From sequence record BK067790.1: DNA of 34,343 nucleotides; one strand, 5' to 3'. Of the stretch, positions 1 to 29,938 are shown piece after piece (position 1 is the stretch's first letter; the number at the start of each line of letters is the position of its first letter). A program made the position numbers and the translations under genes. Under the pieces are notes generated by a model. The model saw only the letters and a list, made by a program, of their open reading frames with translations, made no database searches and was not told the DNA's origin.

Positions 1-240
1 TTCTGTCAGGAAACTGAGGAAAAATGGGGTAAGGGAACATGGTTAGCCAGTATCAAACTCAATATGTATGTCGAGGGCATGACAGTGTATAATCCCAAAG
101 TCATATCATGTCTAAAGTATCTAAACAAGTGCAGAGAAAAGAAACTGATTACACTGGAAGCCATAGCCTCACATTATGACTTGGTTCCAAAAAAGACTAG
201 ACTAAGAAAGAAACTGTCAGGGGTGGTTAATGATGAGTAG
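1..240 (+). CDS. C-terminal 79 aa of the P-loop ATPase that begins at 33516 (wraps the circular junction)
   Basis: Frame 1 is open from base 1 to TAG at 238-240 (FCQETEEKWGKGTW...ITLEAIASHYDL...VVNDE*). It joins in frame to the 276-codon ORF at the right end. Confidence 0.8.
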   Translation, partial: FCQETEEKWGKGTWLASIKLNMYVEGMTVYNPKVISCLKYLNKCREKKLITLEAIASHYDLVPKKTRLRKKLSGVVNDE

Positions 241-340
241 TTTGGACGAATTTATTTCAACTAGGTGTAAAAGTGTATTACATTCTTTTTGTTCAGAAAA
301 GACCTGTATATGCTGGTGTCACCTAAAGGGGAATCACTAA
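230..340 (+). CDS. Cys/His-rich micro-protein (36 aa), putative Zn-binding
   Basis: MMSSLDEFISTRCKSVLHSFCSEKTCICWCHLKGNH*; C-x4-H-x2-C-x4-C-x-C-x-C-H pattern; overlaps the upstream stop and ends 1 nt before the next ATG. Not in the ORF track. Confidence 0.65.
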   Translation: MMSSLDEFISTRCKSVLHSFCSEKTCICWCHLKGNH

Positions 341-341
341 G

Positions 342-524
342 ATGAAAATCTGTTATGACTGTATGGAAGTTGCAAAGTATCTAGTACATGACAAGGGCAC
401 TCATGTATGTCAGGTATGCTTTCACAAAAGATATTCCAAAAGAAAGTATGTCAATAACAACTATCAGTATAAGAAATACACAATGAAAGACGTAAAGAAA
501 CATCTAGAGAAGGACTGGGATTGA
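342..524 (+). CDS. small Zn-finger protein (CxxC...CxxC)
   Basis: CYDC...CQVC; tightly packed in an operon. Confidence 0.7.
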   Translation: MKICYDCMEVAKYLVHDKGTHVCQVCFHKRYSKRKYVNNNYQYKKYTMKDVKKHLEKDWD

Positions 525-616
525 CAGTCTATCGTTGTGCAAAATGTGGCTTTAACAGTGAGAATGTTGAAGTTGTTTCAGAACACATTGCAGTAGTACA
601 TAGAGATGAAGTTTAG
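521..616 (+). CDS. C2H2 zinc-finger micro-protein (31 aa)
   Basis: TTG start overlapping the upstream TGA; MTVYRCAKCGFNSENVEVVSEHIAVVHRDEV* (C-x2-C-x12-H-x4-H). Confidence 0.7.
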   Translation: MTVYRCAKCGFNSENVEVVSEHIAVVHRDEV

Positions 617-713
617 CAGACCCGAACCAATGTATTCGTACTGTCCATGCTGTAACAAGCCGTTAAAGCCTACTCAAAAACAAGTTATCGTTCATTCATC
701 TTGTCTGATATAA
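606..713 (+). CDS. Zn-binding micro-protein (35 aa)
   Basis: MKFSRPEPMYSYCPCCNKPLKPTQKQVIVHSSCLI*; CxxC...HxxC. Confidence 0.6.
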   Translation: MKFSRPEPMYSYCPCCNKPLKPTQKQVIVHSSCLI

Positions 714-798
714 TGTTCTTTCATGTGTTCAGATAAATCATAGGTTGTTTCCTTACACACCTTACACCAGTTACCTTCTGACTGTTTGCTGTAATTCA

Positions 799-1272
799 TT
801 AGTCATTATCCATATCTTCTTCTTTGTCCTTACCCATCATAGCGTCAAGGAATGAACGTCTTTTCTCGCCCTTGACTTGGTAGGAACGTTCAATCTTGTT
901 TCTAGCAATCTTGTCAATCAAGGTACTTTGTGCAGAACCGTTTTCTCTGATGGACTCTGAGGATTTGGAATCTATTGAATACTGATAAGCGATAACTAAT
1001 TCTTTGATTTGTTCTGACAATGCTACTGCCTTTTGTCTTGACATAAAGTTGTACACTTGTGTTGAAAGGTTTTGAAAGTTTTCTAATTCTAAGACAAACC
1101 TTGCAAGGTGAGGCGAGGCTACGATAAGTGTCTTGTAGTATAATGACTTTGGGTCAATAACTAAACTTTTCTCAAAGGTTCCGTCCTCTTGTGGAACTTG
1201 CTCTATGCGTTGAACGGACTGAACCAGTACGTCAACTAAGTCCTTGTGTTCAGGTTCGCTTTGTGGTATCAT
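799..1272 (-). CDS. hypothetical protein (157 aa)
   Basis: Long ORF with natural composition; TATA-like TTATAG about 24 nt upstream of the ATG on the minus strand. Confidence 0.8.
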   Translation of the reverse strand: MIPQSEPEHKDLVDVLVQSVQRIEQVPQEDGTFEKSLVIDPKSLYYKTLIVASPHLARFVLELENFQNLSTQVYNFMSRQKAVALSEQIKELVIAYQYSIDSKSSESIRENGSAQSTLIDKIARNKIERSYQVKGEKRRSFLDAMMGKDKEEDMDND

Positions 1273-1289
1273 AGCCCTGAATTTTGTAG

Positions 1290-1310
1290 TTACTATAACC
1301 TTAAAAGGAT
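1290..1310. promoter_or_regulatory. divergent archaeal TATA-like promoters
   Basis: TTAAAA (1301-1306) lies about 25 nt before GTG 1331; TTATAG on the minus strand lies about 24 nt before ATG 1272. Confidence 0.45.
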
Positions 1311-1330
1311 AATGGTTTTTGAATTAATTG

Positions 1331-1483: not shown

Positions 1484-1499
1484 TTAAAAATGAATAGTG

Positions 1500-7300: not shown

Positions 7301-10300
7301 TTAGTTGCAAATACTGGAAATACAAACACAACTTATTCTGATACTGTACCGACACCAAACACAGTAAATTATTATCAGGTCAGGACATTGATAGGTTCTG
7401 CTGAATCAAATGCTATTTATGATTCAACTACAATCACGCCAGTTAATTACAGAACATATACTGCAACTGCAAGTGCAACAACTTGTGATACTGGAACATT
7501 GTATGCTGATGGTACACATGAAACAGGTATGCCAGCTCAAAATGGTGGAAACAGGTATTGTCTTGTAACTTCAATGGAATACGACATATCTGCAATTCCT
7601 GATACTTCAACAATTACAAGTGCAGTTATTGAAGAAACCCATTCTATTTGGACTTCTGGATTTTCCCCATCTTGTGATTACAAATCCAATATGTCACAAC
7701 AGCCATCAACATCAACCACACAACAAAAATGGGATTCTGTAATAGCTGGTACAGTATATGCAAATGATCCAAACTGTATTTCAGGTTATACAAGTGGAAC
7801 TGCGTATGATGTGCCATTAAGTTCACAGGCTATAACAGATATAGAAACGCAGTTATCAGGGGATTGGTTTGGAATTAATTGGGCTATTGATAATTTCCCA
7901 AGCCTTGCCAACGCTGGAACTGGGGGCACACCAGCTAGTGTTACAGGTGGAACATCATTACTAAAATTAGAATATTCCTATATACCACCATCAGCCAATG
8001 CCACAGTTGGTGGCGTACCATCTGCACCAACTGGATTGACAGCAACTTTCAATACAACTACTGCTGACATTGACTTGGCTTTCACAGCACCAGCAAATAA
8101 TAACGGAAGTGCAGTTATTGGTTACAAAGTTGAAGTCTCAACTGACAATGCAACTTGGAGTACGGTCACTGCTGACACTGGAAACACAAACACAACTTAC
8201 ACAGATCTAAATCCTACAATGGGAAGTTTGAATTACTACAAAGTTTCTGCAATTAACGCATACGGAACTGGTGCAGTTTCAAACATAGACAATGACATGG
8301 CTGGGGTTCCACCTGACGCACCGACAATTACCTCAACCTCAACAGACAATCCAAACACAACACCTTTGGAAATTACAGTTAACTGGACAGCACCAACAAA
8401 TACTGGAACGGCTGGAATTACAAACTATGAGGTCTATCGTGACGGTACATTGGTAACGACAGTTGGTAATGTTACAAGTTATACTGATACAGTTCCAACT
8501 GGCGGTGGCACGTTTGTTTATTCATTAAAATCTGTAACACCACATGGAACTTCTGTATTGTCTGCAACTGCTTCACATACTACACCAACAGTACCACCAG
8601 CACCAACTTCAGCACCTACACTTGCAATAGCAAACCCTGACTCAAATCCGTTTGACGTAACATTGTCATGGTCTTTGCCAAGTTCAGGGGGATCGGCAAT
8701 CACATCATTTGAGGTCTTTAGAAGTACAGATGATATAACCTACTCAAGCGTAGGCAATACTTCACAGTTAATCTTCTATGACACTGTACCAAATGTCGGT
8801 ACATTCTATTACAAGTTTTCAAGCATTAACTTGGTAGGCAATTCAGTTCAGTCGCCTTCAAGTAATATCGCAACACCTACCGAACCAGTTGCAGACTCTA
8901 GTGTCACACTGGCAATCAACAGTCCTGATCCAAGTCCTTTGGATATTACAATAAGCATTGTAGCACCAAGTGGTAACGGTGGTTCTGCAATTACTGGATA
9001 TAACTTGCACTCATCAAATGACGATATAACTTACACACAGATCGCTACCAATGTCACAACAGATCAGACAGTGACAGTATCTTCGGCTGGAACTTGGTAC
9101 ATTAAATCACAGGCAATCAATAACGCTGGAACTGCTGGACTTGGAAGTGCAACAAGTATAACCACACCTTCAGTGCCAACTGGTGACGCAAGTGTTACTT
9201 TGGCAATTCCTGACCCTGACAACTTCCCATTTGATTCAACTGCAACTTTTGTAGCACCAAGTGGTAATGGTGGTTCTGCTGTAACTGGTTACAACTTGTA
9301 TTATTCTGATGATGATATAACCTACTCACAGATAGCAACTGCAAGCAACTCTGTTATCAGTCAGACTTTGACTGGTGCTGGAACTCATTACTTTAAAGTT
9401 GAAAGCATAAACAATGTAGGAACTTCAGCACTCAGTTCGGCAATAACCATTGACACACCAACTGTACCTTCATCTGACGCAAGTGCAACATTGGCAATCA
9501 ACAATCCTAACCCAAGTCCTTTGACAATAACTGCGACACTGGTTGCACCTTCATCTGACGGTGGCAGTGCAGTAACAAACTATAACTTGTGGATTTCAAA
9601 TGACGATATAACTTACACTCAAATCGCAACTGCAATCAACGGAACCTTTGATCAGACAGTAAGTCAGTCTGGAACTTATTACTTTAAGGTAGAATCCACT
9701 AACCTAGTTGGCACTGGTGGTCTTGGAAGTGCAACAAGCATAGCCACGCCAACTGTACCAACTGCACCTCAGAACGCAGGCAGTACAATAGCTGACATTG
9801 ACAACGCACCTTATGACGTAACTGTAACATGGGAAACACCTTCATCAACTGGCGGTTCTGACTTGACACAGTATAACGTTTACAGAAAACAAGGCAGTAG
9901 TGCATACTCTTTGTTGACAACAACCACTGGTCTAAGTATAACTGACACGGTTCCGACTTCACTAACAACCAACTTTACTTACAAGATTCATTCAGTAAAC
10001 AATGTTGGCGAGTCAACTGCATTTGACGATACGACTATTACAACATTCAATGTGCCTTCAGCACCAACACTTTCAGTTACAACTGGAACTACCGTACTGT
10101 CTTGGAACGTTCCAAGCAGTGACGCAACTGTAAGCAGTTATAAAATTTACAGGGACAACGTTTTGCTTACAACAGTCGGTACTGTTACAACATACTCTGA
10201 CTTTAGCACAATCGTGTTTGGAAACTCTTATGACTTTAAGATAGTCGCAGTATCATCTTTGGGTGACAGTGCTGATTCAAACACTGTAACTACAACGCCT

Positions 10301-11876: not shown

Positions 11877-11878
11877 TT

Positions 11879-17677: not shown

Positions 17678-17784
17678 TGTGTTACACCCAATTTAGAATG
17701 TCACAAATTTTAAGTGACACTTCTATTTCTTTTTCTTTTGATAAAAAATCAGACCAGCAAGACGAGGACGAAGAAGATGGGTGA
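17677..17784 (+). CDS. 35-aa peptide with acidic tail
   Basis: TAATG coupling; MCYTQFRMSQILSDTSISFSFDKKSDQQDEDEEDG*. Confidence 0.45.
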   Translation: MCYTQFRMSQILSDTSISFSFDKKSDQQDEDEEDG

Positions 17785-17980
17785 CTTGTGGAAATACAAG
17801 GCAATCGCAGAAATCAAAGCCCGTCAGGAAGAAGCACGAAATAAAATGAAAAACAAAGACAATGATTATGAATGTCGTTCATGTGGTACTTTGATTAAAG
17901 ATTATGTTTTACTTCTTATCCATATAAACAATGGACATGAACACGAAATAAGATATTTGAATAAAGATGAAACCAGTTAA
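17777..17980 (+). CDS. C2H2-type Zn-finger protein
   Basis: MGDLWKY...YECRSCGTLIKDYVLLLIHINNGH; ATG 17777 preferred over the track start. Confidence 0.7.
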   Translation: MGDLWKYKAIAEIKARQEEARNKMKNKDNDYECRSCGTLIKDYVLLLIHINNGHEHEIRYLNKDETS

Positions 17981-18245
17981 TCTTAGCACCCAGTTTTTAT
18001 TATTCTTCATACCAGTCGCAGGGTATTACGCATGGTATAGGATAGGCAAACTATGGTCTGGATTCTTTTTGAATCTTGCACTTGGACTTACGGTGATTCC
18101 GTTGTTTGTTTTTCCAAATATGTTTTTGTATCAAAACTTTTTATTCCTAAGCATATCGATAGTCGGCTTTACAATAAAGATATACTTTTTAGTCAAGTGG
18201 TCAAAACAACATAACGAGAGGTGCGAAAATGACAAAGAGAATTAA
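17967..18245 (+). CDS. small multi-TM membrane protein
   Basis: Three hydrophobic segments; FIP..GYYAWYRIGKL resembles small Nitrosopumilus membrane proteins (from recall, unverified). Confidence 0.7.
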   Translation: MKPVNLSTQFLLFFIPVAGYYAWYRIGKLWSGFFLNLALGLTVIPLFVFPNMFLYQNFLFLSISIVGFTIKIYFLVKWSKQHNERCENDKEN

Positions 18246-18318
18246 ATGCAGAATGTGTGGTTCTGACAACCATTTTGGAAACATGAAGTGCAAAGAGTGT
18301 GAGAGTATATTTGGCTAA
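18229..18318 (+). CDS. Zn-ribbon micro-protein (29 aa)
   Basis: GAGGTG SD upstream; MTKRIKCRMCGSDNHFGNMKCKECESIFG*. Confidence 0.7.
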   Translation: MTKRIKCRMCGSDNHFGNMKCKECESIFG

Positions 18319-18568
18319 GTGTGAATGTGGTTCGCCACCTTGCAAGTGCAAGTCTTTTCAAAGAGATACCAAATGTGAACACAGAATGAAAGGCGAGTTT
18401 GGAAAAGAGTTACACGAATGTGGAAAGACTGGAATTTTAAGAGAGGACTGTCACACTTTTTTTCAAAGTAAGAAAGTTCTTTGTGAGGAACATTACGGTC
18501 AACATTACAGATACGCCCATACCAAGTGTGGGATATGTGGTACGACATACGCTGAATGTTGTTGTTAA
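18299..18568 (+). CDS. Cys/His-rich protein
   Basis: Many Cys/His, ending CGICGTTYAECCC; start codon uncertain (GTG). Confidence 0.55.
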   Translation: MRVYLAKCECGSPPCKCKSFQRDTKCEHRMKGEFGKELHECGKTGILREDCHTFFQSKKVLCEEHYGQHYRYAHTKCGICGTTYAECCC

Positions 18569-18579
18569 TGCTTGTTGGT

Positions 18580-18645
18580 TTAACTTAGCTGACAAGGTGG
18601 TTGGCTACCGATTAGTTAATTAGATGGGGGGAATAACCCCCCCTA
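18580..18645 (+). other. intergenic pair of stem-loops
   Basis: TTAACT...AGTTAA enclosing GGTGG-TTGG-CTACC; then G6-AATAA-C7 hairpin (18626-18643). Confidence 0.4.
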
Positions 18646-18747
18646 TTGACTGGACTTTGTAACAAGTGTTATACTTCTAACGTGGAATTGTTTGATGTTG
18701 ATGAGGGACTATACCAGTGTGAGATATGCATAATAGGCAACGAATGA
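18646..18747 (+). CDS. Zn-ribbon micro-protein (33 aa)
   Basis: TTG start; MTGLCNKCYTSNVELFDVDEGLYQCEICIIGNE*; ATGA-coupled to the nuclease. Confidence 0.6.
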   Translation: MTGLCNKCYTSNVELFDVDEGLYQCEICIIGNE

Positions 18748-19067: not shown

Positions 19068-19234
19068 CCATACCAAAAAACATATATTATTATATATTAT
19101 TATTATAATCCTAGAGGCTAGAACCGTATTATAAGGGACACTCAGTCGGGTCTTATCCCCTCAGTCTAAAAGTACGGCAAGGTATATTGTACCTCATTGA
19201 TTGCCTCACAAACATTTTAATATAGAAAATTATA

Positions 19235-20071
19235 ATGATAGTAATTATGAATGAACGTGATGAAAAAAGAGTAGAAAAGGTATGGGGTAGCATGGTCAGA
19301 TTGGAAACTGCAAAGTACCATGTCGATAATACCGAACCGTCATACCACATACTCTCATTTGGTGGTGGTCGTCAAACAGTGGCACTGTTGTTAAGTATGA
19401 AAAAACTTCTTAGCAATAACAAAAAAGCATGGGTTGTTTTTGCCGATACTGGGGGTGAACACCAAGAAACTTATGATTATATCAACGAGTATATCATACC
19501 GTTTTGTAATATTAATAAAATTCAGTTTGTCAGGGTTCATAACAAATATGGAAAAACCTTGTATGATTACTGCTGGGATAAAAAAATAGTTCCGTCAATA
19601 AAATTTAGGGATTGTACTTCCAAGTTCAAGATAGCACCAATTAGAAAATTCATAAGAGAAGAATTGAATGTTACAAGAAAACACCCATGCTATGTTCATA
19701 TTGGAATATCTTATGACGAGGCAACTAGAATGAACGCCTCTAATGTTTTGTATGCCAAGTCAGTATATCCGTTTGTTGACGGATATAGGGACATTGAGGG
19801 CAAAAAGACAGTTGAGGACTGTGCAAGAATTGTATCTGATGAGGGATTTCCACCAGTTCCTAAATCGGGTTGCTGGTTCTGTCCATTTGCTCAGACATTG
19901 GACTTGTTAGACCCACGTTACAAAGAAAAGACACAGGCATTGGAAGAAAATAATAGCAGATACCCAGAAATTAAACTGAGAGGTATGGGTAAAAACACCA
20001 AATCAGTCAATGAGTTGACAATAAATGACGTAGGAAAAGATTCTTGTAAGTCTGGGTACTGTATGGTATGA
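19235..20071 (+). CDS. PAPS-reductase/DndC-like PP-loop family protein
   Basis: ILSFGGGRQT (PP-loop), FADTGGEH.ETY, CTSKFKIAP, IGIS.DE..R, KSGCWFCPF; start uncertain. Confidence 0.85.
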   Translation: MIVIMNERDEKRVEKVWGSMVRLETAKYHVDNTEPSYHILSFGGGRQTVALLLSMKKLLSNNKKAWVVFADTGGEHQETYDYINEYIIPFCNINKIQFVRVHNKYGKTLYDYCWDKKIVPSIKFRDCTSKFKIAPIRKFIREELNVTRKHPCYVHIGISYDEATRMNASNVLYAKSVYPFVDGYRDIEGKKTVEDCARIVSDEGFPPVPKSGCWFCPFAQTLDLLDPRYKEKTQALEENNSRYPEIKLRGMGKNTKSVNELTINDVGKDSCKSGYCMV

Positions 20072-20163
20072 AGTGTAACTGCCTACCCTGCCAAAACGGC
20101 ACACATCAAGACAGACAATGTATCTATCGTTGCAACTGTACCCATGAGGCACATGAGAAATGA
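20068..20163 (+). CDS. Cys/His-rich micro-protein (31 aa)
   Basis: ATGA coupling at both ends; MKCNCLPCQNGTHQDRQCIYRCNCTHEAHEK*. Confidence 0.6.
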   Translation: MKCNCLPCQNGTHQDRQCIYRCNCTHEAHEK

Positions 20164-20261
20164 GTTGGTTTAACCTATCTGTAAACGCCAAGACCTGTAA
20201 AAGATGTAAGCAAAGAATTATGAATTATCCATGCATTGAATGTGGATTTAGGCATGATTAG
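20160..20261 (+). CDS. Zn-ribbon micro-protein (33 aa)
   Basis: MSWFNLSVNAKTCKRCKQRIMNYPCIECGFRHD*. Confidence 0.65.
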   Translation: MSWFNLSVNAKTCKRCKQRIMNYPCIECGFRHD

Positions 20262-20297
20262 TCACAAAAAATAGAATCTATTTTCAGATAATATCAA

Positions 20298-20324
20298 ACC
20301 CCTAGAGGGCTTCATTCTAGGGGT
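20298..20324. terminator. hairpin after the operon end
   Basis: ACCCCTAGA (20298-20306) / TCTAGGGGT (20316-20324), 9-bp perfect stem. Confidence 0.5.
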
Positions 20325-20466
20325 ACAAGGAATATTAACGCAATCTTAATACTCGAATTTAATTATTATATAACAAATTTAAACCTTGAAAGGTTTGGTT
20401 CGTGACGAATTTAATCTAATCAGCGAACTTGAATTGAATTTCAGTATATTGTATTTAAAATTAAAG

Positions 20467-20616
20467 TAAACTTACTTAGGTGTCCCATGATAATTACGGG
20501 ACACTTTTTCTCTATTAACTTTCTTAGAACTGATTTCCAACAAAGTTAATGATGAAATTGTGTCCCGTAAACTCATTATACTTTAAATAAAACACTGACT
20601 TACTTAGGTAAGTTTA
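20467..20616. repeat. nested inverted and direct repeats (origin- or operator-like)
   Basis: TAAACTTAC/GTAAGTTTA outer IR; TTACGGGACAC (20494-20504)/GTGTCCCGTAA (20560-20570); GTGTCCC at 20480; ACTTACTTAGGT direct repeat at 20470 and 20598. Confidence 0.8.
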
Positions 20617-20642
20617 TTAAATCAATAAAATATAGATAAATA

Positions 20643-20837
20643 TTGAAAGTAGTTAAGAATTATTCACTAAATGTTGAAGTGGTAAAGGCATTTGACGAAG
20701 AAGTTTCAGACCAAACAAGGTCAAGACTTATTGAAGCACTTATGATAAAATTCTTGGTTGAATATACTAGGGGTAATGAGGAAACCCCTAGTATTGACGA
20801 TTCCAGTCTTACCACAGAAAAGGAAGCGATACAATGA
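20643..20837 (+). CDS. ribbon-helix-helix regulator
   Basis: VVKNYSLNVEVVKAFDEEV...RSRLIEALMIKFL: RHH strand-helix-helix pattern; ATGA-coupled to the helicase. Confidence 0.75.
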   Translation: MKVVKNYSLNVEVVKAFDEEVSDQTRSRLIEALMIKFLVEYTRGNEETPSIDDSSLTTEKEAIQ

Positions 20838-22498
20838 CTTTAATCCCAGATGATAAAACTATTACGAATTGTGATTTTTGTCTTAAAGATGATTATGAAA
20901 ACTGTACCAAAGGGGGTCTGTGTCCAGCAAATCCTAACAAGCCACAGTTAAAGAAACTGATTTTATGTGACCATTGTAAAAATGGGGGTGACTGGAAGGC
21001 ACATGAGGAATGTGAGAAAAACTATATCGCCAATGGATTAAAGACATTTTGTCAATGCCCTAGTCTATCTCATGGAAGAAATGCCACGACTTCTATGGAA
21101 CCAGTTTCTTTTATGGACAAGATAAAGTTTGATTCTCAGACTTTGGAAACCGTAAAACATGAGCATAAGGACAGAATTGATATTATTGCAACAAGACTTA
21201 TTGACAAATATAATTTTGTAACTGCTAGAGAAACAGACACTATCTACTACTTTAATGGTAAGATATATGATTCCAAAAACTGTGAGTCAGTAATCAAACA
21301 GGAAACCGAAATACAGATTGTTGAATGTACCAAGTCAGACAAGGCTGAAGTCATTGACAAGATAAAGTCAAGAACCTATGAAAGCCTAGACCATTTTGAC
21401 AAGGACATTGAAAGCCTAGTAGTGCAAAACGGTGTATTGAGTTTACAGACAATGGAATTAAGCCCACATACCCCCCTTAATTTGGCAAAAGTTTTGTTGC
21501 CTTTGAATTACGTCAAGCCTGAGTTTGAAATTGATATAGACGATTTGTTTAATTCCTTAAAGTCAAATCTCAAAGATACTTTGTTTTGGAAATTTTTGGA
21601 AACTTCTTTTACGCATGAGTACAAAGCTGATGAGGAATCAATGCTTTCAGTTTTGGAAATGATGGCTTCGACAATTATTAGAAAACAAATTGACGAAAGA
21701 AGTTTTATTATGCTAGGCAACGGTGCTAACGGAAAGTCAGTATGTCTTGACTATCTTTCTGCCATACTTGGCAGGGACAATGTTTCTCATATTCCGTTAC
21801 AGGTTTTGGCTGAAGATAAATTTGCCAGTGCAAGACTTGACGGAAAACACGCAAATATATTTTCTGACTTGGAAAGAAATGAGCTGTACCATACTGGTAT
21901 CATCAAGGACTTGTCTTCAGGCGAACCAGTTCATGCACAACAAAAAAACAAGAACGGTTTTGACCTGTACCCTTTTGCCACTTTGGTATTTTCATGTAAC
22001 AAGTTTCCCAGAGTCTTTGACCAGTCACAGGGATTTTTCAGACGTTGGATTTTGGTAAAGTGGGAAAGAAATTTTGAGAAAGACCCACAGAAAAATGACA
22101 ACTTGAAAAAGGAACTGCTGGAAAAGACAGAAGAAATGGACTTGGTTTTCTCATGTCTTTGTCATGTTGCAAAGAAACTTTATGACTCAAACAGATTTAC
22201 AAATCCTAAAGACTGGAAGACAGTTCAGAAATTATGGAATGAAAATTCTGACCCTTTGAACTGGTTTGTCGAGAACCATATCATTGATTCAAACGGAAGC
22301 CGTTCAAAGCGTGACACATATCAGTTTTACAAAAAAATAATGTTTGAAAAGGGCGAAGTCCCTTTGGGTATGGGTAAATTTAGCAAGGCATTTTCAGAAT
22401 ACTATGAGGATTCAAAGTCAGATCACGAAAGAATTTGGCTTAACATTGAGTTTAGGGAACCACAACAAACAACGTTAGAGGAAAGTGACAAAACATGA
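20834..22498 (+). CDS. D5-like superfamily 3 replicative helicase with N-terminal Cys/His clusters
   Basis: Walker A GNGANGKS, Walker B ANIFSD, motif B IKDLSSGEPV..QQKNK..F, motif C FSCN, GFFRRW; D5_N-like region; C-terminal wHTH-like FSKAF. Confidence 0.9.
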   Translation: MTLIPDDKTITNCDFCLKDDYENCTKGGLCPANPNKPQLKKLILCDHCKNGGDWKAHEECEKNYIANGLKTFCQCPSLSHGRNATTSMEPVSFMDKIKFDSQTLETVKHEHKDRIDIIATRLIDKYNFVTARETDTIYYFNGKIYDSKNCESVIKQETEIQIVECTKSDKAEVIDKIKSRTYESLDHFDKDIESLVVQNGVLSLQTMELSPHTPLNLAKVLLPLNYVKPEFEIDIDDLFNSLKSNLKDTLFWKFLETSFTHEYKADEESMLSVLEMMASTIIRKQIDERSFIMLGNGANGKSVCLDYLSAILGRDNVSHIPLQVLAEDKFASARLDGKHANIFSDLERNELYHTGIIKDLSSGEPVHAQQKNKNGFDLYPFATLVFSCNKFPRVFDQSQGFFRRWILVKWERNFEKDPQKNDNLKKELLEKTEEMDLVFSCLCHVAKKLYDSNRFTNPKDWKTVQKLWNENSDPLNWFVENHIIDSNGSRSKRDTYQFYKKIMFEKGEVPLGMGKFSKAFSEYYEDSKSDHERIWLNIEFREPQQTTLEESDKT

Positions 22499-22611
22499 GG
22501 TGCAAGTTATGTGGCAAGGTTGTAAAGGTTGTAAACGAATATCATTGTTGGGTTGCGTCACAGCATTGTGGTGCGTGTCACTACTTTGGGGGTAAAAAAA
22601 GTGTCAGGTAG
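22495..22611 (+). CDS. Zn-binding micro-protein (38 aa)
   Basis: ATGA coupling; MRCKLCGKVVKVVNEYHCWVASQHCGACHYFGGKKSVR*. Confidence 0.65.
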   Translation: MRCKLCGKVVKVVNEYHCWVASQHCGACHYFGGKKSVR

Positions 22612-22621
22612 AAATTATGAA

Positions 22622-22774
22622 ATGTATTCGTATTGCAACGGCTGTTCAGAACGAACCATGAAAAAATATCCTAAAGATATGTTGAGGTGTCCAGACTGTA
22701 ATCAGAAACTAAGACATAAACCGAAATCAACTTCAGCAAAAAGACGGGCAAACATGAACTTACCTCGTATTTAA
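22622..22774 (+). CDS. Zn-ribbon protein with basic tail
   Basis: MYSYCNGC...RCPDCNQKLRHKPKS; ATG 22622 preferred over the track start 22553. Confidence 0.7.
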   Translation: MYSYCNGCSERTMKKYPKDMLRCPDCNQKLRHKPKSTSAKRRANMNLPRI

Positions 22775-22780
22775 ATATGG

Positions 22781-22800
22781 GTATAGTTAGGTATAGTTAG
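22781..22800 (+). repeat. 10-bp tandem repeat between TATA and start codon
   Basis: GTATAGTTAG x2, between TTTAAATA (~22771) and ATG 22804. Confidence 0.7.
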
Positions 22801-22803
22801 GGC

Positions 22804-22986
22804 ATGGCTAGACCACGAATAGATTACAATACTCAGTCAATCTGTATGGAATGTAACCAACTTTATCCAAAGGAATTAAAATTGACAATGTGTCCTAATC
22901 CAAACTGTTTCAACTCTCATTTGAGATTCCAGTCAAGAAGTAAGACGGCTAGACATAGACGAGAGGTTGCAAGGTATGAGGTTTAA
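22804..22986 (+). CDS. Zn-ribbon protein with basic tail
   Basis: CMEC...CPNPNC...LRFQSRS; similar to 22622..22774. Confidence 0.7.
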   Translation: MARPRIDYNTQSICMECNQLYPKELKLTMCPNPNCFNSHLRFQSRSKTARHRREVARYEV

Positions 22987-23092
22987 TTGGAAGAAATGCA
23001 AATTATGTGGGGAAATGTTTGATGAAGATGAAAGATATAAACACCAAAGTCAGAAACACTTTTGGTATTTGGGTGATATAACAGATGATTGA
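22976..23092 (+). CDS. C2H2 Zn-finger micro-protein (38 aa)
   Basis: GAGGT SD; MRFNWKKCKLCGEMFDEDERYKHQSQKHFWYLGDITDD*. Confidence 0.65.
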   Translation: MRFNWKKCKLCGEMFDEDERYKHQSQKHFWYLGDITDD

Positions 23093-24104
23093 AATAATAA
23101 TGCTGTTAATGCTTGGCGGTGAAATGGATCTGTCAACTGAACTGGCTGTCAATGTTAAAGAACAAACTGGCAAAGTAGATGAATTACAATTAGAGTATGA
23201 CTCATTACAAGATGGGTTGCTTAAAGTTAAAACTGATATGAATGGTATCTATGCTGATTATATCAAATGGGAAATCAAGTCCAATGTTAATGACGAAAGC
23301 AAAGCCATGAAGGACTATTACCACGATAAAGCACTTGAAGTAAAAAATGAATGGCGTGTGCTAAACAGTGAGATGAAAAAACTTGAAAAGGAATCTGATG
23401 AAGTCATGTTTGACTTGGAAACTGCCAAAGTGTTGCTTGAAAAAATGGAAAAGGATTTGGAAAATCTGTTAAAGGCTAACGAACCCATAGAATCAAGATA
23501 CAAAAATATCAGCATATCACTTTCAAAGAACTGTCAAACCATGATCAACTACGGGTTATACACCAACTGCCCTACCTATGCCGAACTGTTTGAACTGTAT
23601 GACAATACAAACCCTACCGTGTCAGGCACAATGGTTGACACAAAGTATGACATTGAACGTGTTGACACAATGAAAAAGCACTGGAAATTCTATGAACAAT
23701 ATGATAATTTTGAACTTGTAATGGTTCAGCCTGACTCAGACTTTCAGCACAAAAGTGTAAACGTAGAGATACAGGCTGGAAACTTTACGACACTTGCACT
23801 TGTCGGCAACGACAATTCCAGAAACTTTAAGAACGGAAGTTATACCACATGGGAAAACTTTAAGATAAATGATAGTTGTACCAAAATTATTGTCGCACCT
23901 GACATGGAACTGATTGACCAAGCCGTTGAGTTTGCAAAGAATAACTGTGACGGTGACATTGATATTTTAGAAAACACTGTAATCAAACAGGAACCTACAC
24001 CTCATAACGATAGGAACTGGCGTGACTCACCAGCCTTAGTTTATCAGGACTGGTTAAGGAACGCCATTGAAAATAACAAGGGATTGATGTTAGGTCGTGG
24101 TTAA
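23085..24104 (+). CDS. secreted/anchored coiled-coil protein with Cys-containing C-terminal domain
   Basis: Short hydrophobic N-terminus, heptad-rich region, globular C-terminal domain. Confidence 0.8.
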   Translation: MIEIIMLLMLGGEMDLSTELAVNVKEQTGKVDELQLEYDSLQDGLLKVKTDMNGIYADYIKWEIKSNVNDESKAMKDYYHDKALEVKNEWRVLNSEMKKLEKESDEVMFDLETAKVLLEKMEKDLENLLKANEPIESRYKNISISLSKNCQTMINYGLYTNCPTYAELFELYDNTNPTVSGTMVDTKYDIERVDTMKKHWKFYEQYDNFELVMVQPDSDFQHKSVNVEIQAGNFTTLALVGNDNSRNFKNGSYTTWENFKINDSCTKIIVAPDMELIDQAVEFAKNNCDGDIDILENTVIKQEPTPHNDRNWRDSPALVYQDWLRNAIENNKGLMLGRG

Positions 24105-24460: not shown

Positions 24461-24610
24461 ATGGGAAGATGGGAAGATGATATTAAACCAGCACAGGATT
24501 TAGTTCAGATTAAACGTAACAAATTAAAAAAACTACTGGTCTTATACGGTATCGCTGGTGCTTGTACAGGTATAGCATTTGGAATGTATTTTTCAGGGGG
24601 TATATGCTAA
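24461..24610 (+). CDS. small single-TM protein (49 aa)
   Basis: CTTAAATA about 23 nt upstream; MGRWEDD...KLLVLYGIAGACTGIAFGMYFSGGIC*; TAATG coupling. Confidence 0.65.
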   Translation: MGRWEDDIKPAQDLVQIKRNKLKKLLVLYGIAGACTGIAFGMYFSGGIC

Positions 24611-24729
24611 TGCCTATCGGTGGCTATGGGTACGGTGTAACAAGTGATTACACAGTAAAGTCTGGGAAACGTTGCCCTGCTTGTGGCAAAACAAAATGTA
24701 AACATGGAAAAAAAGCTAGAGTTTTCTAA
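24610..24729 (+). CDS. Zn-binding basic micro-protein (39 aa)
   Basis: MPIGGYGYGVTSDYTVKSGKRCPACGKTKCKHGKKARVF*; TAATG-coupled on both sides. Confidence 0.65.
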   Translation: MPIGGYGYGVTSDYTVKSGKRCPACGKTKCKHGKKARVF

Positions 24730-25307
24730 TGCAAGATAAAGTAAATTATATTTCCCCCGAAACTTTTGAGAGAATTGTTGAGTATGTTCCGATACTTGGT
24801 ATTCGCAAGTGGAAAGATGAGGACATTAAAATGCTCTATAAGACAATGTATTACTGTGCATTACGGGCTAACGAGGCGATTCATTTAAAGAAAGAAAGTT
24901 TCAACTTGGAAGATCGTGAAATTTATCTAGGCAAAACCAAAACAAAGAAACAAGATACTGCACATATTCCTCATATTTTTGTAGATGAACTAAAGACTTG
25001 GCTTATCTTCAAGGAAAAAGGCAGACTGTTTGAAGGGCTGACATATCCAAGACTGTATGTATGGTGCAAAAGAATAGGGTCTGACTTGGATATTTCAGCA
25101 TGGCAAAGTCTTGAAGCCGAAGTTGGTGAAAAGGTTGTGACTCACTTGTTTAGAAAGTCAATCGGCAAGGAAATGTTAAACGGAACTCATGGTGAAAAAG
25201 CCAGTTCGATTCCTGTAATATCAAAACACCTCAGACATTCAAAACCTTCCATGACAGTTGACCATTATCTAAAAGCCAGTCTTGAATCAGTCAAAGAGGC
25301 GTGGTAG
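24729..25307 (+). CDS. tyrosine recombinase (catalytic domain only, 192 aa)
   Basis: YYCALRANEA (R), KTKTK (K), HLFRKS (HxxR), LRHS (H), TVDHY (Y). Confidence 0.92.
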   Translation: MQDKVNYISPETFERIVEYVPILGIRKWKDEDIKMLYKTMYYCALRANEAIHLKKESFNLEDREIYLGKTKTKKQDTAHIPHIFVDELKTWLIFKEKGRLFEGLTYPRLYVWCKRIGSDLDISAWQSLEAEVGEKVVTHLFRKSIGKEMLNGTHGEKASSIPVISKHLRHSKPSMTVDHYLKASLESVKEAW

Positions 25308-25798: not shown

Positions 25799-26084
25799 AT
25801 CCCCTAAGTCCGTCACGTTTTTCGTACAAACTTTCAATCCATTCCTTGTCAGTCAGGATTTCATCACCTGTCATTTCATAATGTGTCAGAATTATGGAAG
25901 AACAGTCTAGGCATTTACCTACTAGATTTCCATAACCCCCGTCAAATCCTGAAGCATTACTTTTTGAATGGAAACTTACCATTCTATGATTACAGTCTTT
26001 AGGGTCTTGCAACTCACCAAGTATCGCATTGATTATTGTCTTTGCTTCAGACTCGGAAGCCTTACGGATTTGTGGTTCACTCAT
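25770..26084 (-). CDS. hypothetical protein with C/H...CxxC
   Basis: GAGGAC SD before ATG 26084 (MSEPQ). Confidence 0.7.
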   Translation of the reverse strand: MSEPQIRKASESEAKTIINAILGELQDPKDCNHRMVSFHSKSNASGFDGGYGNLVGKCLDCSSIILTHYEMTGDEILTDKEWIESLYEKRDGLRGYGWYEKDIS

Positions 26085-26235
26085 TGTGTACGTCCTCAAC
26101 AAAACAACCAGCACATAGATACACGTTACCATCAACAAAAGATATTTCTTTGTTTTTTGGCAACTTTGTAACTATGTATCTGTGACCTATCCCTATCGGA
26201 TTTTCACAGTTGTCGCAGTATAGTGAGGACTTCAT
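26077..26235 (-). CDS. Zn-ribbon micro-protein (52 aa)
   Basis: MKSSLYCDNCENPIGIG...YLCAGCFVEDVHNE*; overlaps both neighbours. Not in the ORF track. Confidence 0.7.
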   Translation of the reverse strand: MKSSLYCDNCENPIGIGHRYIVTKLPKNKEISFVDGNVYLCAGCFVEDVHNE

Positions 26236-26432: not shown

Positions 26433-26743
26433 TGGTGTTCAATTCCTTTTGCTTCGTCTTTGTCTGAATACATTCTAGTGAATATGACTTCAAGTTTTGT
26501 AGGACTTCCGTCTTTGTCAAAGCTGACATAAACGGGATATTCCCCGTCACCCCAGTTGGTGAACGTTGCAACACCTGAAAACTTTTCACTAGGCAAGTTG
26601 TCAATGTTTGCACAAAAGTCACCCCACTTTGATTCGTCATACAGTTCAGGGTGGTGCTTGATGTAACAAGGGTCACCAACCCATACCAGTCCAGCGTCAA
26701 CTGAAACTGAACCTACACAGTATCTGCCTTTTTTGACAGTCAT
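26429..26743 (-). CDS. DUF4241-like viral protein
   Basis: VGSVSVDAGLVWVGDPCY...TNWGDGEYPVY motif pair. Confidence 0.65.
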   Translation of the reverse strand: MTVKKGRYCVGSVSVDAGLVWVGDPCYIKHHPELYDESKWGDFCANIDNLPSEKFSGVATFTNWGDGEYPVYVSFDKDGSPTKLEVIFTRMYSDKDEAKGIEHQ

Positions 26744-26895
26744 TGTTTCAAGCCCTCAACTTTCAAACATTCTTCACAAAGTATCTCACCTTTTTTGTTT
26801 TCAAAATACACGAAAGAAAGTACATTACATACTTTACAAACATAGTTTTTTGCAAACATTTGTAGGCTATTTTCTTTTTTTATAAAGTCGTTCAT
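26740..26895 (-). CDS. Zn-ribbon micro-protein (51 aa)
   Basis: MNDFIKK...VCKVC...ILCEECLKVEGLKQ*; ATGA coupling at both ends. Confidence 0.7.
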   Translation of the reverse strand: MNDFIKKENSLQMFAKNYVCKVCNVLSFVYFENKKGEILCEECLKVEGLKQ

Positions 26896-27113
26896 AAGTC
26901 CTCAATCCTTAGACCGTCTTTCAATATCAAGTCGGGGTGAGGTCTTTCTATCCCATATTTTTCAACTTGTTCTTTCATTCGCCATAAAACCCCACTAAAT
27001 ATTTCATTAAACATTTGATAGCCGTTAGCTTGATTTTCAGCTACGTTGTCTAATCGGGCTTTAGCTTCTTGTAAGGTTTCCATATAGTCACGAATGTCGT
27101 ATATGTCTGTCAT
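26892..27113 (-). CDS. hypothetical protein
   Basis: ATGA-coupled; junction motif upstream. Confidence 0.7.
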   Translation of the reverse strand: MTDIYDIRDYMETLQEAKARLDNVAENQANGYQMFNEIFSGVLWRMKEQVEKYGIERPHPDLILKDGLRIEDL

Positions 27114-27316: not shown

Positions 27317-27645
27317 TGTCTAGCCTCAACTTTTTTCATATATGCAAGTATCTCTTCCAACTCATTTATTGAAAAATGTGTTGTGCTTACAATATGTTTT
27401 GGTTTTGCTTTAGACGTTAATTTTGTTGGTAGTTTTCCGTATGACTTGATTTGGAAGTTAAAGCTTGTACTTCCATTCATACCAGATTGACTACAATAGA
27501 TTCTAATCATTGAACCGTCTTGATTAGCGTATTCTAGCCAATTATCTACTGCGTCTTTATCTACTTCGATTGCTTTACAAAATGGTTTGTCTATTAATAA
27601 ATCACCCATTCTTGTATCGGCACTTTTTACGATATGAGTTTTCAT
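27313..27645 (-). CDS. hypothetical protein
   Basis: ATGA-coupled. Confidence 0.7.
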   Translation of the reverse strand: MKTHIVKSADTRMGDLLIDKPFCKAIEVDKDAVDNWLEYANQDGSMIRIYCSQSGMNGSTSFNFQIKSYGKLPTKLTSKAKPKHIVSTTHFSINELEEILAYMKKVEARQ

Positions 27646-27839
27646 TGTGTTCTGTCCTCACAATTCTCATGCCAAACTAACTGCATTGAAATTTTTTCCA
27701 ACACTTCTTTTGGTATGTCTTTGTCTTTGATAGGTTCCTTACAATAGCAACATGAATAACCTAGTCCATATTGTTCTGACATTTTTGCTTCGTTACTTTC
27801 ATCAGATTGAACGAATTGATTTTGGTTTTTGTTTTCCAT
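27642..27839 (-). CDS. Zn-binding protein, first gene of a leftward operon
   Basis: CCYC...WHENC; TTTAATA about 23 nt upstream. Confidence 0.7.
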   Translation of the reverse strand: MENKNQNQFVQSDESNEAKMSEQYGLGYSCCYCKEPIKDKDIPKEVLEKISMQLVWHENCEDRTQ

Positions 27840-27902: not shown

Positions 27903-27962
27903 TTAGGGTTGATTTGGTTCTTTTGGCTTACATTTTGTACAAACATGATAGCGTTTTGTCAT
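27903..27962 (-). CDS. possible 19-aa peptide
   Basis: MTKRYHVCTKCKPKEPNQP*; starts 3 nt after the upstream stop. Confidence 0.3.
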   Translation of the reverse strand: MTKRYHVCTKCKPKEPNQP

Positions 27963-27965
27963 GTG

Positions 27966-28106
27966 TTAATATCGTGCAGAACGGATATAAGATTTTCCTG
28001 AAACACCAGCCATGCCGTAATGGCACAATGCACATTCATTATTTGAAGTCCAACAATGTCTAGGCTTACGACATTTCTGGGTCTTTTTACAAGTCTTACA
28101 CCTCAT
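27966..28106 (-). CDS. Zn-binding micro-protein (46 aa), paralog of 22495..22611
   Basis: MRCKTCKKTQKCRKPRHCWTSNNECALCHYGMAG...; ATGA coupling. Confidence 0.7.
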   Translation of the reverse strand: MRCKTCKKTQKCRKPRHCWTSNNECALCHYGMAGVSGKSYIRSARY

Positions 28107-28309
28107 AATTCTAAACGCCTACGCCTTGCAATAGTATTCTTTGCACGTTTAGATAATTTTACACCACAGCAAGGACACCAAATCCCTTCATACTTTATGA
28201 ACAAACAACATTTTGCACATTTTTTATATGGTGTATTTGCCAAATTTCTCACGACTTTTTTATGTTCGTATTCAGGTTTTAGACAAACATTCTTGCAAAC
28301 TAAAGTCAT
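28103..28309 (-). CDS. Thaumarchaeota-type CPCCG Zn-ribbon protein
   Basis: CKNVC...KKCAKCCLFIKYEGIWCPCCGVKL resembles the small conserved Nitrososphaeria family with KRC..C..FI.WDG..CPCCG..LR (recalled, unverified). Confidence 0.75.
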   Translation of the reverse strand: MTLVCKNVCLKPEYEHKKVVRNLANTPYKKCAKCCLFIKYEGIWCPCCGVKLSKRAKNTIARRRRLEL

Positions 28310-28698
28310 TTCCTACGCTTCCTTTTTTTCTTAGGTGCTGGTTGTGAGCTGAAAGCTTGAATTAATGCAAGTGTTCCTACTGCTATTTCGCCCATTACAT
28401 GACCAGTTTTTTTAAGGATTTGAATCTTACGTTCTTTAGACTTTCTTTTTCTTTCGATTTCGATTTCTTCTTTTGTTTGAAAGTCTGTTAAAATTACGTT
28501 GTATTTTTTGCACATAACTTCTTGAATGTTTCTTATTTCCCATGTGAAATTATGATTCGTGCTGTCAAAATGGTCACAAATTTTATCTTTGTCACCTGTT
28601 TCAAAGTCACATTCTAAACAGACACCAAGAACTATATCAGTATTAAAATTAGACCATTCTTTCATAGTGTATTTGCGAATATATCTCATATTTTGCAC
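28306..28698 (-). CDS. hypothetical protein with CxxC/H motif and basic tail
   Basis: CLECDF...CDHF; ends KKKRKRRK; the true start may be ATG 28689. Confidence 0.7.
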   Translation of the reverse strand: MQNMRYIRKYTMKEWSNFNTDIVLGVCLECDFETGDKDKICDHFDSTNHNFTWEIRNIQEVMCKKYNVILTDFQTKEEIEIERKRKSKERKIQILKKTGHVMGEIAVGTLALIQAFSSQPAPKKKRKRRK

Positions 28699-28868
28699 CC
28701 ATTTTTCTTACTATGGTTTACCAATTCAATGTATAATTCATCTTGAATTTTTCTAATATGTTCTGTTAGTTCAGGACTTAACATATTTTCCAATTCCATT
28801 AAATCGTTTAAATGACCCCTTGCCAATTTTATACGATTAGTTACTGCATACTTGCCAATTTTTTTCAT
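28686..28868 (-). CDS. hypothetical protein
   Basis: ATGA-coupled. Confidence 0.65.
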   Translation of the reverse strand: MKKIGKYAVTNRIKLARGHLNDLMELENMLSPELTEHIRKIQDELYIELVNHSKKNGCKI

Positions 28869-29449
28869 CTTAAAGTTTCCCTAAACATTTTGAATACAGT
28901 TTCATCTAATGGCTTAGATGTTTGGGTTAGTTCATCAAATATTTGATTATGTATTTGGTCATATTTTTGATTATACCTGTAAAGTCTTGTCCTCATTATA
29001 TCTTCATAAAACTCATGTACTCTATCACCCATATATTCACCATCATCATCTTTGACAATATCAAGTTCTATGTAATTTTTATGTCGTGGATCATGATAGT
29101 CAATTAAATGAACTTCTTTTGTGTCACCGAACTGGTCTCTTGCAACATCAAATATTGTACAGTTTCCAGTCCTAACCCACATATGCTGTCTTCCAGTCCC
29201 ATGTCCTGTAAGATGAATACCCTTAACTAAGCTCCAGCTTTCTTGCCAGCCACCTAATTTATTGTATAGTGATTCGTTACTTATTCCACAATGCCTCACA
29301 AATTTTCTTCCGTTGGACTTGAAGATTTGTGTTTTTTTATCATAAGTTCTATTTTTTATATTTTCAGAACTTAAAAATAATGAACCATGCATTATTTCAT
29401 CATAGTCTAAATAATATTCCTCATCTTGATAGACAATGCATTGAATCAT
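28865..29449 (-). CDS. hypothetical protein (194 aa)
   Basis: ATGA-coupled, junction motif. Confidence 0.75.
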   Translation of the reverse strand: MIQCIVYQDEEYYLDYDEIMHGSLFLSSENIKNRTYDKKTQIFKSNGRKFVRHCGISNESLYNKLGGWQESWSLVKGIHLTGHGTGRQHMWVRTGNCTIFDVARDQFGDTKEVHLIDYHDPRHKNYIELDIVKDDDGEYMGDRVHEFYEDIMRTRLYRYNQKYDQIHNQIFDELTQTSKPLDETVFKMFRETLR

Positions 29450-29643
29450 CTTAAAGTCCTCACGGTTTCGTCCTTGTATTCTAAGGTCTTTTCAACCCAG
29501 CCCAATATCAAGTCCATTGAATCAAGGTGTTTCTTCATGGCTTCTTTAGCTTCAAAATCTGTTTCTATATCGTACAGTTGAGACCATGAATCAAACAAGT
29601 CAAGGTTTAATTTGTACAAATTTTCCAAGTCTTTGTCGTTCAT
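29446..29643 (-). CDS. hypothetical protein
   Basis: ATGA-coupled, junction motif. Confidence 0.7.
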   Translation of the reverse strand: MNDKDLENLYKLNLDLFDSWSQLYDIETDFEAKEAMKKHLDSMDLILGWVEKTLEYKDETVRTLR

Positions 29644-29750
29644 TTTTCCAAGTCCTCATGGCTTTTTTCATGGGTGTTTTTGTTTGTGGTTCGGGTAAAC
29701 TGTTTACCACAATACCAACATTTAGGACTGTCCGAATTATATAATGTCAT
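29640..29750 (-). CDS. C2H2 Zn-finger micro-protein (36 aa)
   Basis: MTLYNSDSPKCWYCGKQFTRTTNKNTHEKSHEDLEK*; junction motifs at both ends. Not in the ORF track. Confidence 0.75.
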   Translation of the reverse strand: MTLYNSDSPKCWYCGKQFTRTTNKNTHEKSHEDLEK

Positions 29751-29938
29751 TGGTTCAAGTCCTCACCAATCGCCTTTTTATGACATTGCCAACATTCCCA
29801 ATCAGAATATAAACCTACTTTATTTCCACAATCGCACCATAAATTATATTCTGGACAATCATCATTTGTCCATTCATCAATCTCTTTTTTTGTATATGGA
29901 ATTTTTGCATATTCTATCTGTTCTTTTTCAGTAATCAT
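29747..29938 (-). CDS. Cys-rich small protein
   Basis: C..Y.LWCDC...ECWQCH; ends EDLNQ. Confidence 0.7.
   Translation of the reverse strand: MITEKEQIEYAKIPYTKKEIDEWTNDDCPEYNLWCDCGNKVGLYSDWECWQCHKKAIGEDLNQ

Follow-up and report, generated by a model that had tools for sequence, protein, structure and literature searches.

Small zinc-binding proteins have been described both for archaeal viruses and for archaeal cells. Proteins of the AFV1p06 type (PDB 2LVH) from crenarchaeal viruses consist of a single finger in ~50 amino acids (aa) and bind one zinc ion and DNA; typically one or two C2H2 sequences occur per crenarchaeal virus, and the same study found no homologue in Thaumarchaeota (PMC3541406). 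The GenBank record of His1, a spindle-shaped archaeal virus of the Halspiviridae, flags CxxC motifs (one or two) in ~9 of 35 open reading frames (ORFs). Among cells, Haloferax volcanii encodes C(P)XCG micro-proteins, which are stand-alone, one-domain proteins of <70 aa, with translation and regulatory phenotypes known for many of them (PMC6562870, PMC10117724); two C(P)XCG motifs are carried by 21% of its proteins of ≤50 aa and by 12% of those of ≤100 aa (PMC6562870). Here we analyse sequence record BK067790.1, the genome of the uncultured, previously published Nitrosopumilaceae spindle-shaped virus isolate NMM1 (Marefusivirus montereyense, family Nipumfusiviridae, in the ICTV nomenclature; PMC12451623). 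The window, i.e. the whole stretch of DNA analysed, comprises all 34,343 base pairs (bp) of it and contains 23 small genes for Cys/His-rich micro-proteins. The family was described out of metagenomes by Ni et al. 2024, where the small cysteine-rich genes receive no discussion (PMC10866085). With a probability of about 70%, these micro-genes are genuine genes for single-domain metal-binding micro-proteins, the basic ones binding nucleic acids and the acidic ones binding proteins.

Five C2H2-type ORFs of NMM1 share the ligand plan of AFV1p06, but their number is higher and none is a detectable AFV1p06 homologue. His1 is likewise without sequence relationship to NMM1 and differs from it in that its genome is linear and its polymerase protein-primed. 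The density of small motif-bearing ORFs in NMM1 is 5.0 per 10 kilobases (kb), as counted by a mechanical pipeline which undercounts (17 rather than 22 in NMM1), against 0.9–3.9 in the nine sister genomes, 2.8 in His1, 1.3 in SSV1 and 0.3 in SIRV2. Of the genomes compared (ten Nipumfusiviridae, His1, SSV1 and SIRV2) NMM1 thus has the densest set, with about twice the density of His1, and its set is accompanied by comparative evidence. The share in NMM1 is 56% of the genes of ≤92 aa, in a virus, as opposed to the Haloferax values given above. The haloarchaeal class itself is defined by two C(P)XCG motifs in <100 aa; one such motif is present in 12 of the 23 micro-proteins and two in none of them. 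An earlier sequence-only reading of this DNA had named small zinc fingers as a feature of archaeal viruses, which is documented by the crenarchaeal study (PMC3541406) and by the GenBank notes of His1. The NMM1 set is a dense new example at the upper end of this known trait and not a new system.

Conservation and selection

The nine other published Nipumfusiviridae genomes were compared with NMM1 by tblastn and ORF-level alignments; NSV1 (MK570053) is not among them. Intact orthologues were found for 20 of the 23 micro-genes, which are named here by the position of their first nucleotide. Twelve are present in all five Marefusivirus genomes (230, 342, 18299, 18646, 20068, 20160, 22495, 22622, 22804, 24610, 27966 and 28103) and seven extend to other genera (230, 342, 692, 18229, 18299, 20160 and 28103). 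Invariant columns make up 79 of 90 for Cys versus 305 of 826 for other residues (p = 4e-21). The proportions of non-synonymous (pN) and synonymous (pS) differences, pooled across the micro-gene alignments, are 0.24 and 0.68, and the within-genus pN/pS is 0.26 in the annotated frame versus 1.41 and 1.26 when the same DNA is read one or two bases out. Since the ratio is low solely in the annotated frame, selection acts on the micro-proteins and not on the DNA. The sequence-only reading had taken these ORFs for real coding and named lack of conservation as an observation that would speak against it; the tblastn survey and the substitution ratios clearly gave the opposite. The orthologues of 20068 and 20160 are split by inserted gene(s) in NMC1 and NMJ1 and both are still intact, so the two behave as independent genes.

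Many of the micro-ORFs might also be chance open frames in AT-rich DNA with common Cys codons. Nine are missing from the deposited annotation, and the loose two-pair motif occurs in 34 small six-frame ORFs of NMM1 versus 19 ± 4 in dinucleotide shuffles. As random frames of this DNA are rich in Cys codons (3.7% Cys in off-map ORFs), the motif alone is weak evidence, and because the loose motif is not rare by chance the weight of the case is placed on conservation. The strict four-ligand motif was counted on a curated map of 66 genes, off-map ORFs being small ORFs in other frames: among the mapped genes with products of ≤92 aa it is present in 22 of 39, and among the small off-map ORFs in 13 of 276 (Fisher p = 9e-15). 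The Cys content of the micro-proteins is 9.4%, compared with 1.6% in the other small gene products and 1.1% in the large ones. Against chance stand the frame-specific purifying selection, the invariant Cys columns and the intact orthologues over five to eight genomes. Coding-frame conservation refutes a chance origin for 20 of the 23 genes, and such an origin is conceivable only for 26740, which is without relatives; as an account of many of the ORFs it is extremely improbable.

Micro-genes and their packing

The 23 micro-genes constitute about one third of the ~66 genes of NMM1 and encode proteins of 29–89 aa, 1092 residues in sum, occupying 9.5% of the genome. They are as follows, genus members being the four other Marefusivirus genomes.

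230..340 (+): C5H3 micro-protein, 36 aa, unannotated; orthologues in NMH1, NMP1, NMC1, NMJ1 and NTT1; Cys invariant 5/5; shares 11 nucleotides (nt) with the end of the ATPase gene.
342..524 (+): Cys4 zinc-ribbon-like protein, 60 aa, ORF2, isoelectric point (pI) 9.3; CxxC-x15-CxxC; orthologues in four genus members and NBD1; Cys invariant 4/4.
521..616 (+): C2H2 finger, 31 aa, TTG start, unannotated; CxxC-x12-HxxxxH; orthologue in NMJ1 only, ligands kept.
606..713 (+): CxCC...HxxC micro-protein, 35 aa, unannotated; orthologues in NMH1, NMJ1 and NMP1; Cys invariant 4/4.
692..799 (-): C2H2-like protein, 35 aa, ORF3; CxxC-x9-HxxxH; orthologues in NMJ1, NMC1 and NBC1; ligands invariant.
17777..17980 (+): 67-aa protein with C-terminal C2H2 finger, ORF16; orthologue in NMP1; NMJ1 shares the first 28 residues only.
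18229..18318 (+): Cys4 ribbon, 29 aa, unannotated; orthologues in NMH1, NMC1, NMJ1 and NBC1; Cys invariant 4/4; lies under metatranscriptome contigs (18226-18517).
18299..18568 (+): 85-89-aa protein with 13 Cys and 6 His and a CCC end, ORF17 (GenBank start 18311); orthologues in four genus members, its C-terminal half also in NBD1.
18646..18747 (+): acidic Cys4 ribbon, 33 aa, TTG start, unannotated; orthologues in all four genus members; Cys invariant 4/4.
20068..20163 (+): C6H3 micro-protein, 31 aa, unannotated; orthologues in all four genus members; pN 0.05 versus pS 0.59.
20160..20261 (+): Cys4 ribbon, 33 aa, unannotated; orthologues in four genus members, NBC1 and NBD1; Cys invariant 4/4; Pfam DZR match below threshold.
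22495..22611 (+): MRCxxC...HCW...CxxCHY protein, 38 aa, ORF22, paralogue of 27966; orthologues in four genus members; Cys invariant 5/5; ATGA overlap with the primase-helicase stop codon.
22601..22774 (+), gene 22622: Cys4 ribbon with basic tail, 57 aa (50 aa from ATG 22622), unannotated; distant paralogue of 28103; Cys invariant 4/4.
22804..22986 (+): CxxC-x12-CxxxxC protein with basic tail, 60 aa, unannotated; orthologues in four genus members; pN 0.12 versus pS 0.65; Cys invariant 4/4.
22976..23092 (+): C2H2-like protein, 38 aa, ORF23; CxxC-x10-HxxxxH; orthologues in NMH1, NMC1 and NMP1; ligands invariant.
24610..24729 (+): basic CPACG-x3-CxH knuckle, 39 aa, ORF27; orthologues in four genus members; Cys invariant 3/3; pN 0.085; abuts the gene of a 192-aa tyrosine recombinase, with a 1-nt overlap on either side.
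26077..26235 (-): Cys4 protein, 52 aa, ORF31, leftward accessory operon; orthologue in NMP1 only, 98% identity.
26740..26895 (-): Cys4 ribbon, 51 aa, ORF34; CxxC-x16-CxxC; in a chain of ATGA overlaps; no relative found in the family or IMG/VR.
27642..27839 (-): acidic CCxC...HxxC protein, 65 aa, ORF38; orthologues in NMJ1 and NMP1; Cys invariant 4/4.
27966..28106 (-): basic paralogue of 22495, 46 aa, ORF39; orthologues in four genus members; the family profile retrieves virus-like relatives only.
28103..28309 (-): 8-Cys CKGxC...CxxC...CPCCG protein, 68 aa, pI 9.8, ORF40; in 8/10 family genomes.
29640..29750 (-): classical C2H2 zinc finger by matches to solved fingers, 36 aa, ORF45; no relative found in the family.
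29747..29938 (-): acidic CxC...CxxC protein, 63 aa, ORF46; relative on another IMG/VR contig (L017) with 64% identity, in which the CxC and CxxC pairs are kept and the first Cys is not.

The sequence-only reading had claimed at least 20 small ORFs with CxxC, C2H2 or Cys-His motifs. All 22 ORFs of its list were located at their coordinates with the Cys/His patterns described there, and one more, 692-799 (-), corresponding to GenBank ORF3 with the pattern CxxC-x9-HxxxH, brings the total to 23. That most of them escape a 60-aa cut-off holds as well: 15 of the 22 do not reach 60 aa and are missing from the 60-aa ORF list. The deposited annotation (56 coding sequences) includes 13 of these 22 and lacks 230, 521, 606, 18229, 18646, 20068, 20160, 22622 and 22804. 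The locking of the genes by overlaps of start and stop codons, noted in the same reading, was confirmed for 18 of the 23 starts, which reach back 1–17 nt into the upstream gene (the 4-nt ATGA type in ten, 1 nt in two). The number rises to 19 with 22622 begun at GTG 22601, which is most likely its start as judged from the N-termini of the orthologues.

The twelve genus-core micro-genes are arranged in tight overlapping operons adjoining the genes of the ATPase, the PAPS-reductase-like protein, the D5-type primase-helicase and the minimal tyrosine recombinase. In the leftward accessory operon lie the variable micro-genes. The word TGAGGACTTG recurs 5–8 nt upstream of several starts of the leftward operon (26880-26900, 29735-29755 and 29925-29945, - strand); TGAGGACTTG may represent a module for ribosome binding or a junction module that these genes have in common. 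In the gap between ORF16 and ORF17 a gene for a predicted membrane protein of 92 aa is present (17967-18245, +), which is absent from the GenBank annotation of NMM1; NMP1 ORF15 (18397-18672) is an annotated gene of equivalent position and size.

Two cases of module shuffling were observed in the relatives. In NMP1 (35133-35528) the orthologue of 606 makes up the N-terminal end of a membrane protein of 131 aa, and the NMJ1 orthologue of 17777 (24471-24782) agrees over the first 28 residues and then continues into another C-terminal part, in which the C2H2 finger is absent.

Putative metal-binding motifs

Five micro-proteins are C2H2-type fingers by their ligand pattern: 521, 692, 17777, 22976 and 29640. 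The classical spacing C-x2-4-C-x12-H-x3-5-H is exact in 521, 17777 and 29640, and the central spacer is x10 in 22976 and x9 in 692. None reaches the gathering threshold of Pfam PF00096, the best being 29640 with 20.7 versus 25.2 bits. In a phmmer search of the PDB 29640 matches Gfi-1 (9e-9) and a consensus finger (1.6e-8), and judging by these solved structures it is clearly a classical C2H2 finger. A finger of ZBTB17 in the PDB is matched by 521 with E = 7e-4, its Pfam C2H2 matches being below threshold. About a dozen proteins are Cys4 or Cys3His ribbons or knuckles. Two Cys pairs 8–30 residues apart are present in 342, 18229, 18646, 20160, 22622, 22804, 26077, 26740 and 28103, and these are invariant wherever orthologues exist. 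Three proteins, 230, 20068 and 18299, are of a multi-Cys kind. The sub-threshold family matches of the set are nearly all to zinc fingers, ribbons or knuckles.

All-against-all comparison revealed two paralogous pairs only, 22495/27966 (blastp E = 2.6e-11) and 22622/28103 (E = 1e-4; 3e-5 with a profile). The set thus consists of ~20 unrelated modules and is not one expanded family. The pI is ~9 or more in ten of the 23 proteins, several of which have Lys/Arg tails, and six are acidic. A large zinc demand of the whole set, which the sequence-only reading had suggested, was set aside as unsupported.

Possible functions of the micro-proteins

Judging by the ligand patterns, each micro-protein would fold around one metal ion, probably zinc, as a minimal binding module. 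The basic members most likely bind DNA or RNA, and may be transcription regulators or accessory subunits for the neighbouring replication and recombination functions. The acidic members most likely bind proteins.

Several observations weigh against this assignment. Scans of all small ORFs with Pfam, PHROGs and NCBIfam gave no match above the curated thresholds. Failure to pass family thresholds is usual for proteins of 30–60 aa. Four-Cys knuckles are also able to hold iron or to form disulfides. The functional split by charge was drawn from composition alone, and the only interaction modelled, that of 24610 with the adjacent integrase, gave a complex prediction with no call for or against binding. 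No relatives of 26740 and 29640 were found among the family genomes, nor any of 26740 in IMG/VR, and 521 and 26077 are supported by one orthologue each. Finally, the RNA-library contigs at 18226-18570, described below, could stem from DNA carry-over. As to 26740, a candidate relative on an IMG/VR contig (L018) was discarded, as it lacks the second Cys and aligns poorly.

The sequence-only reading had seen in the micro-proteins a toolkit for host takeover or anti-defence, i.e. decoys or inhibitors of the host TFB, RNA polymerase or immune systems. Five variable members stand in the leftward operon of small accessory genes, a kind of site at which anti-defence genes are kept in archaeal viruses. 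Moreover, 26740 weakly resembles the TFIIB zinc ribbon, and the 28103 family, common to host-like chromosomes, weakly resembles RNA polymerase subunit P/Rpb12. However, these resemblances are all sub-threshold (26740 scores 19.8 bits against the TFIIB ribbon PF08271, and 18.6 bits in the genome scan, versus the cut-off of 29), and the family scans of the micro-proteins gave no anti-defence family, regulator or host-factor mimic above threshold. Besides, 12 of the 23 genes are genus-core and lie beside the replication, recombination and ATPase genes, whereas anti-defence genes usually turn over fast. For the variable members in the leftward operon a part in host takeover or anti-defence is conceivable; as an explanation of the set we regard it as unlikely.

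The CPCCG family 28103/22622 and the host

The 28103 family is the most widely kept member of the set, with extra copies in NYM1. Its signature reads CKGxC ... (G)xKRCxxC ... FIKWxGxxCPCCG ... LRxRxR. A profile search of 1.84 billion representatives yielded 230 clusters at E ≤ 1e-3, most of them of 65–130 aa and matching over the full length, while word-based protein searches (28103, 18299 and the 22495/27966 profile) gave close, virus-like relatives only. No curated family covering the 28103 family was found in the Pfam, NCBIfam and PHROGs scans.

Several homologues belong to cellular contigs. One member adjoins the genes for methylmalonyl-CoA mutase, MeaB, an epimerase-type glyoxalase and purD; another, on a 142-kb contig, adjoins CTP synthase, TrpA, ferritin and GatA/GatB; a further one is on a 98-kb cellular contig. 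Close cluster members are named 'Thermoproteota archaeon' at NCBI, and the Atlas neighbours of 28103, by sequence features as well as by shape, are mostly Nitrososphaerota. The cellular contigs are probably Nitrososphaerota. As the family is common to probable chromosomal genes of this group, the virus borrowed a cellular micro-protein or shares it. The sequence-only reading had pointed to the richness of Thaumarchaeota in CPxCG micro-proteins: this link stands as regards the CPCCG family 28103/22622 on probable Nitrososphaerota contigs, and fails as regards the class with two C(P)XCG motifs, to which none of the 23 belongs.

A virus-like ENA contig of 44.7 kb contains three 28103-type copies (9956-12785) among densely packed small genes, near genes for a DNA methylase, a PAPS-reductase-like protein and an Hjc-like resolvase.

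The AlphaFold2 model of 28103, built from an 80-sequence alignment, has a mean predicted local distance difference test (pLDDT) score of 76.7 and consists of three short strands with beta-hairpins and a C-terminal helix; an earlier model from a 5-sequence alignment was unusable (pLDDT 56). A Foldseek search with the former gave no match at E ≤ 1e-3, its weak top rows being all zinc ribbons (Nop10, L40e, PolD and Rpb12). In VIA-align a single chain among 48,161 had Z ≥ 2, namely Rpb12 (9mu7_L, Z = 2.0). Weak hints of RNA polymerase subunit P were also obtained for the 28103/22622 family from NCBIfam (E = 0.003–0.03) and from a sequence search of the PDB (4qiw_P, E = 0.21). The family resembles RpoP/Rpb12 in having a Lys/Arg-rich tail after a CxxC...CPxCG ribbon, but it differs by a CPCC knuckle and by an additional CKGxC pair at the N-terminus. 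Its scores remain far below threshold: the cellular relatives reach 14–17 versus 72 bits with the subunit P models NF001606/NF001607, and in NMM1 28103 gives no match and 22622 gives 12.2 versus 89 bits; with Pfam there is none. The resemblance to subunit P, seen in sequence and in the predicted model, may be regarded as a lead only. One could imagine that 28103/22622 is an undescribed archaeal zinc-ribbon factor of RpoP/Rpb12 type, chromosomal in Nitrososphaerota, whose viral copies (sometimes two or three) plug into a host machine such as RNA polymerase or compete for it, but we consider this a long shot. If it were true, the zinc micro-protein set of the virus would be a takeover kit made partly of mimics of host micro-proteins.

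Expression and the Cys-rich protein 18299

The NMM1 stretch was found in DNA runs of many marine studies and small parts of it in three metatranscriptome runs. In the region examined, 17600-23200, contigs of all three RNA libraries cover 18226-18570, i.e. genes 18229 and 18299; smaller pieces lie on the PAPS-reductase-like and helicase genes, and the coverage by the DNA run is even throughout. This pattern suggests that the pair 18229/18299 is transcribed. The three runs belong to three studies, and two of the contigs at 18226-18570 begin within 3 nt of the start codon of 18229.

Some of the Cys-rich proteins, chiefly 18299, might instead be structural or virion-associated, with their cysteines in disulfides or on another metal. 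Genes 18229 and 18299 come after the giant structural genes, whose products are of 2301 aa and 1569 aa, and after that of a membrane protein, and they are the parts of 17600-23200 best covered by the RNA libraries. Across six genomes 7 of the 13 Cys of 18299 are invariant, and the protein matches no family, zinc fingers included. However, the ligand spacing of most micro-proteins is that of a zinc knuckle, and they are without signal peptides or membrane segments. Besides, intracellular proteins of mesophilic archaea rarely rely on disulfides. A structural or disulfide role is possible for 18299, and for the Cys-rich proteins more broadly it appears quite improbable.

Virus and larger genes

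NMM1 shares the ATPase and other core genes of the Nipumfusiviridae with the exemplar genomes, the ATPase identity being 37–95% (10 records). The virus is assigned to marine ammonia-oxidising archaea. The IMG/VR record of NMM1 has direct terminal repeats, hence the genome is complete and circular. The ATPase gene spans the ends of the sequence (33516-34343 joined to 1-240, +), in agreement with a circular genome that carries terminal repeats, and a CxxC pair in it (C256 and C259 of the ATPase fragment) is invariant in 10 of 10 family ATPases. Larger genes include those of an HNH endonuclease, a PAPS-reductase-like protein, a D5-type primase-helicase, the 192-aa tyrosine recombinase and the two giant proteins of 2301 aa and 1569 aa.

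A scan of a genome collection for proviruses with the ATPase profile gave two short contigs only, and zero in Nitrosopumilaceae. The two, NYTT01000055.1 and CAYQNM010000060.1, carry Nipumfusiviridae-type ATPases (52% and 38% identity) and were binned in metagenome-assembled genomes of Flavobacteriales and Saccharibacteria, respectively; most likely they are mis-binned viral contigs. The IMG/VR entry IMGVR_UViG_3300024517_000020 has a helicase of 88% identity and a length of 61.6 kb, about twice that of the related NMJ1 genome (34 kb), and may represent a concatemer or a relative of larger size. In one marine DNA run variants skipping 53 and 82 nt were seen at 20243-20297 and 20699-20782, in non-coding DNA upstream of the operon of the ribbon-helix-helix protein and the helicase (RHH-helicase operon). 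The virus population is thus polymorphic for indels upstream of this operon.

Significance

The deposited annotation of a ratified virus species omits at least nine conserved micro-genes together with the conserved membrane-protein gene 17967-18245. As the sister genomes are annotated inconsistently, statistics on gene sharing in the family are skewed to the disadvantage of the genes most typical of it. The micro-proteins constitute a tractable panel of short, conserved and unrelated zinc modules for work on archaeal infection. Through the CPCCG family these viruses have a concrete, testable connection to cells, namely to a micro-protein family, so far uncurated, of archaea that are probably ammonia-oxidising; genetic tools for this host group are very few.

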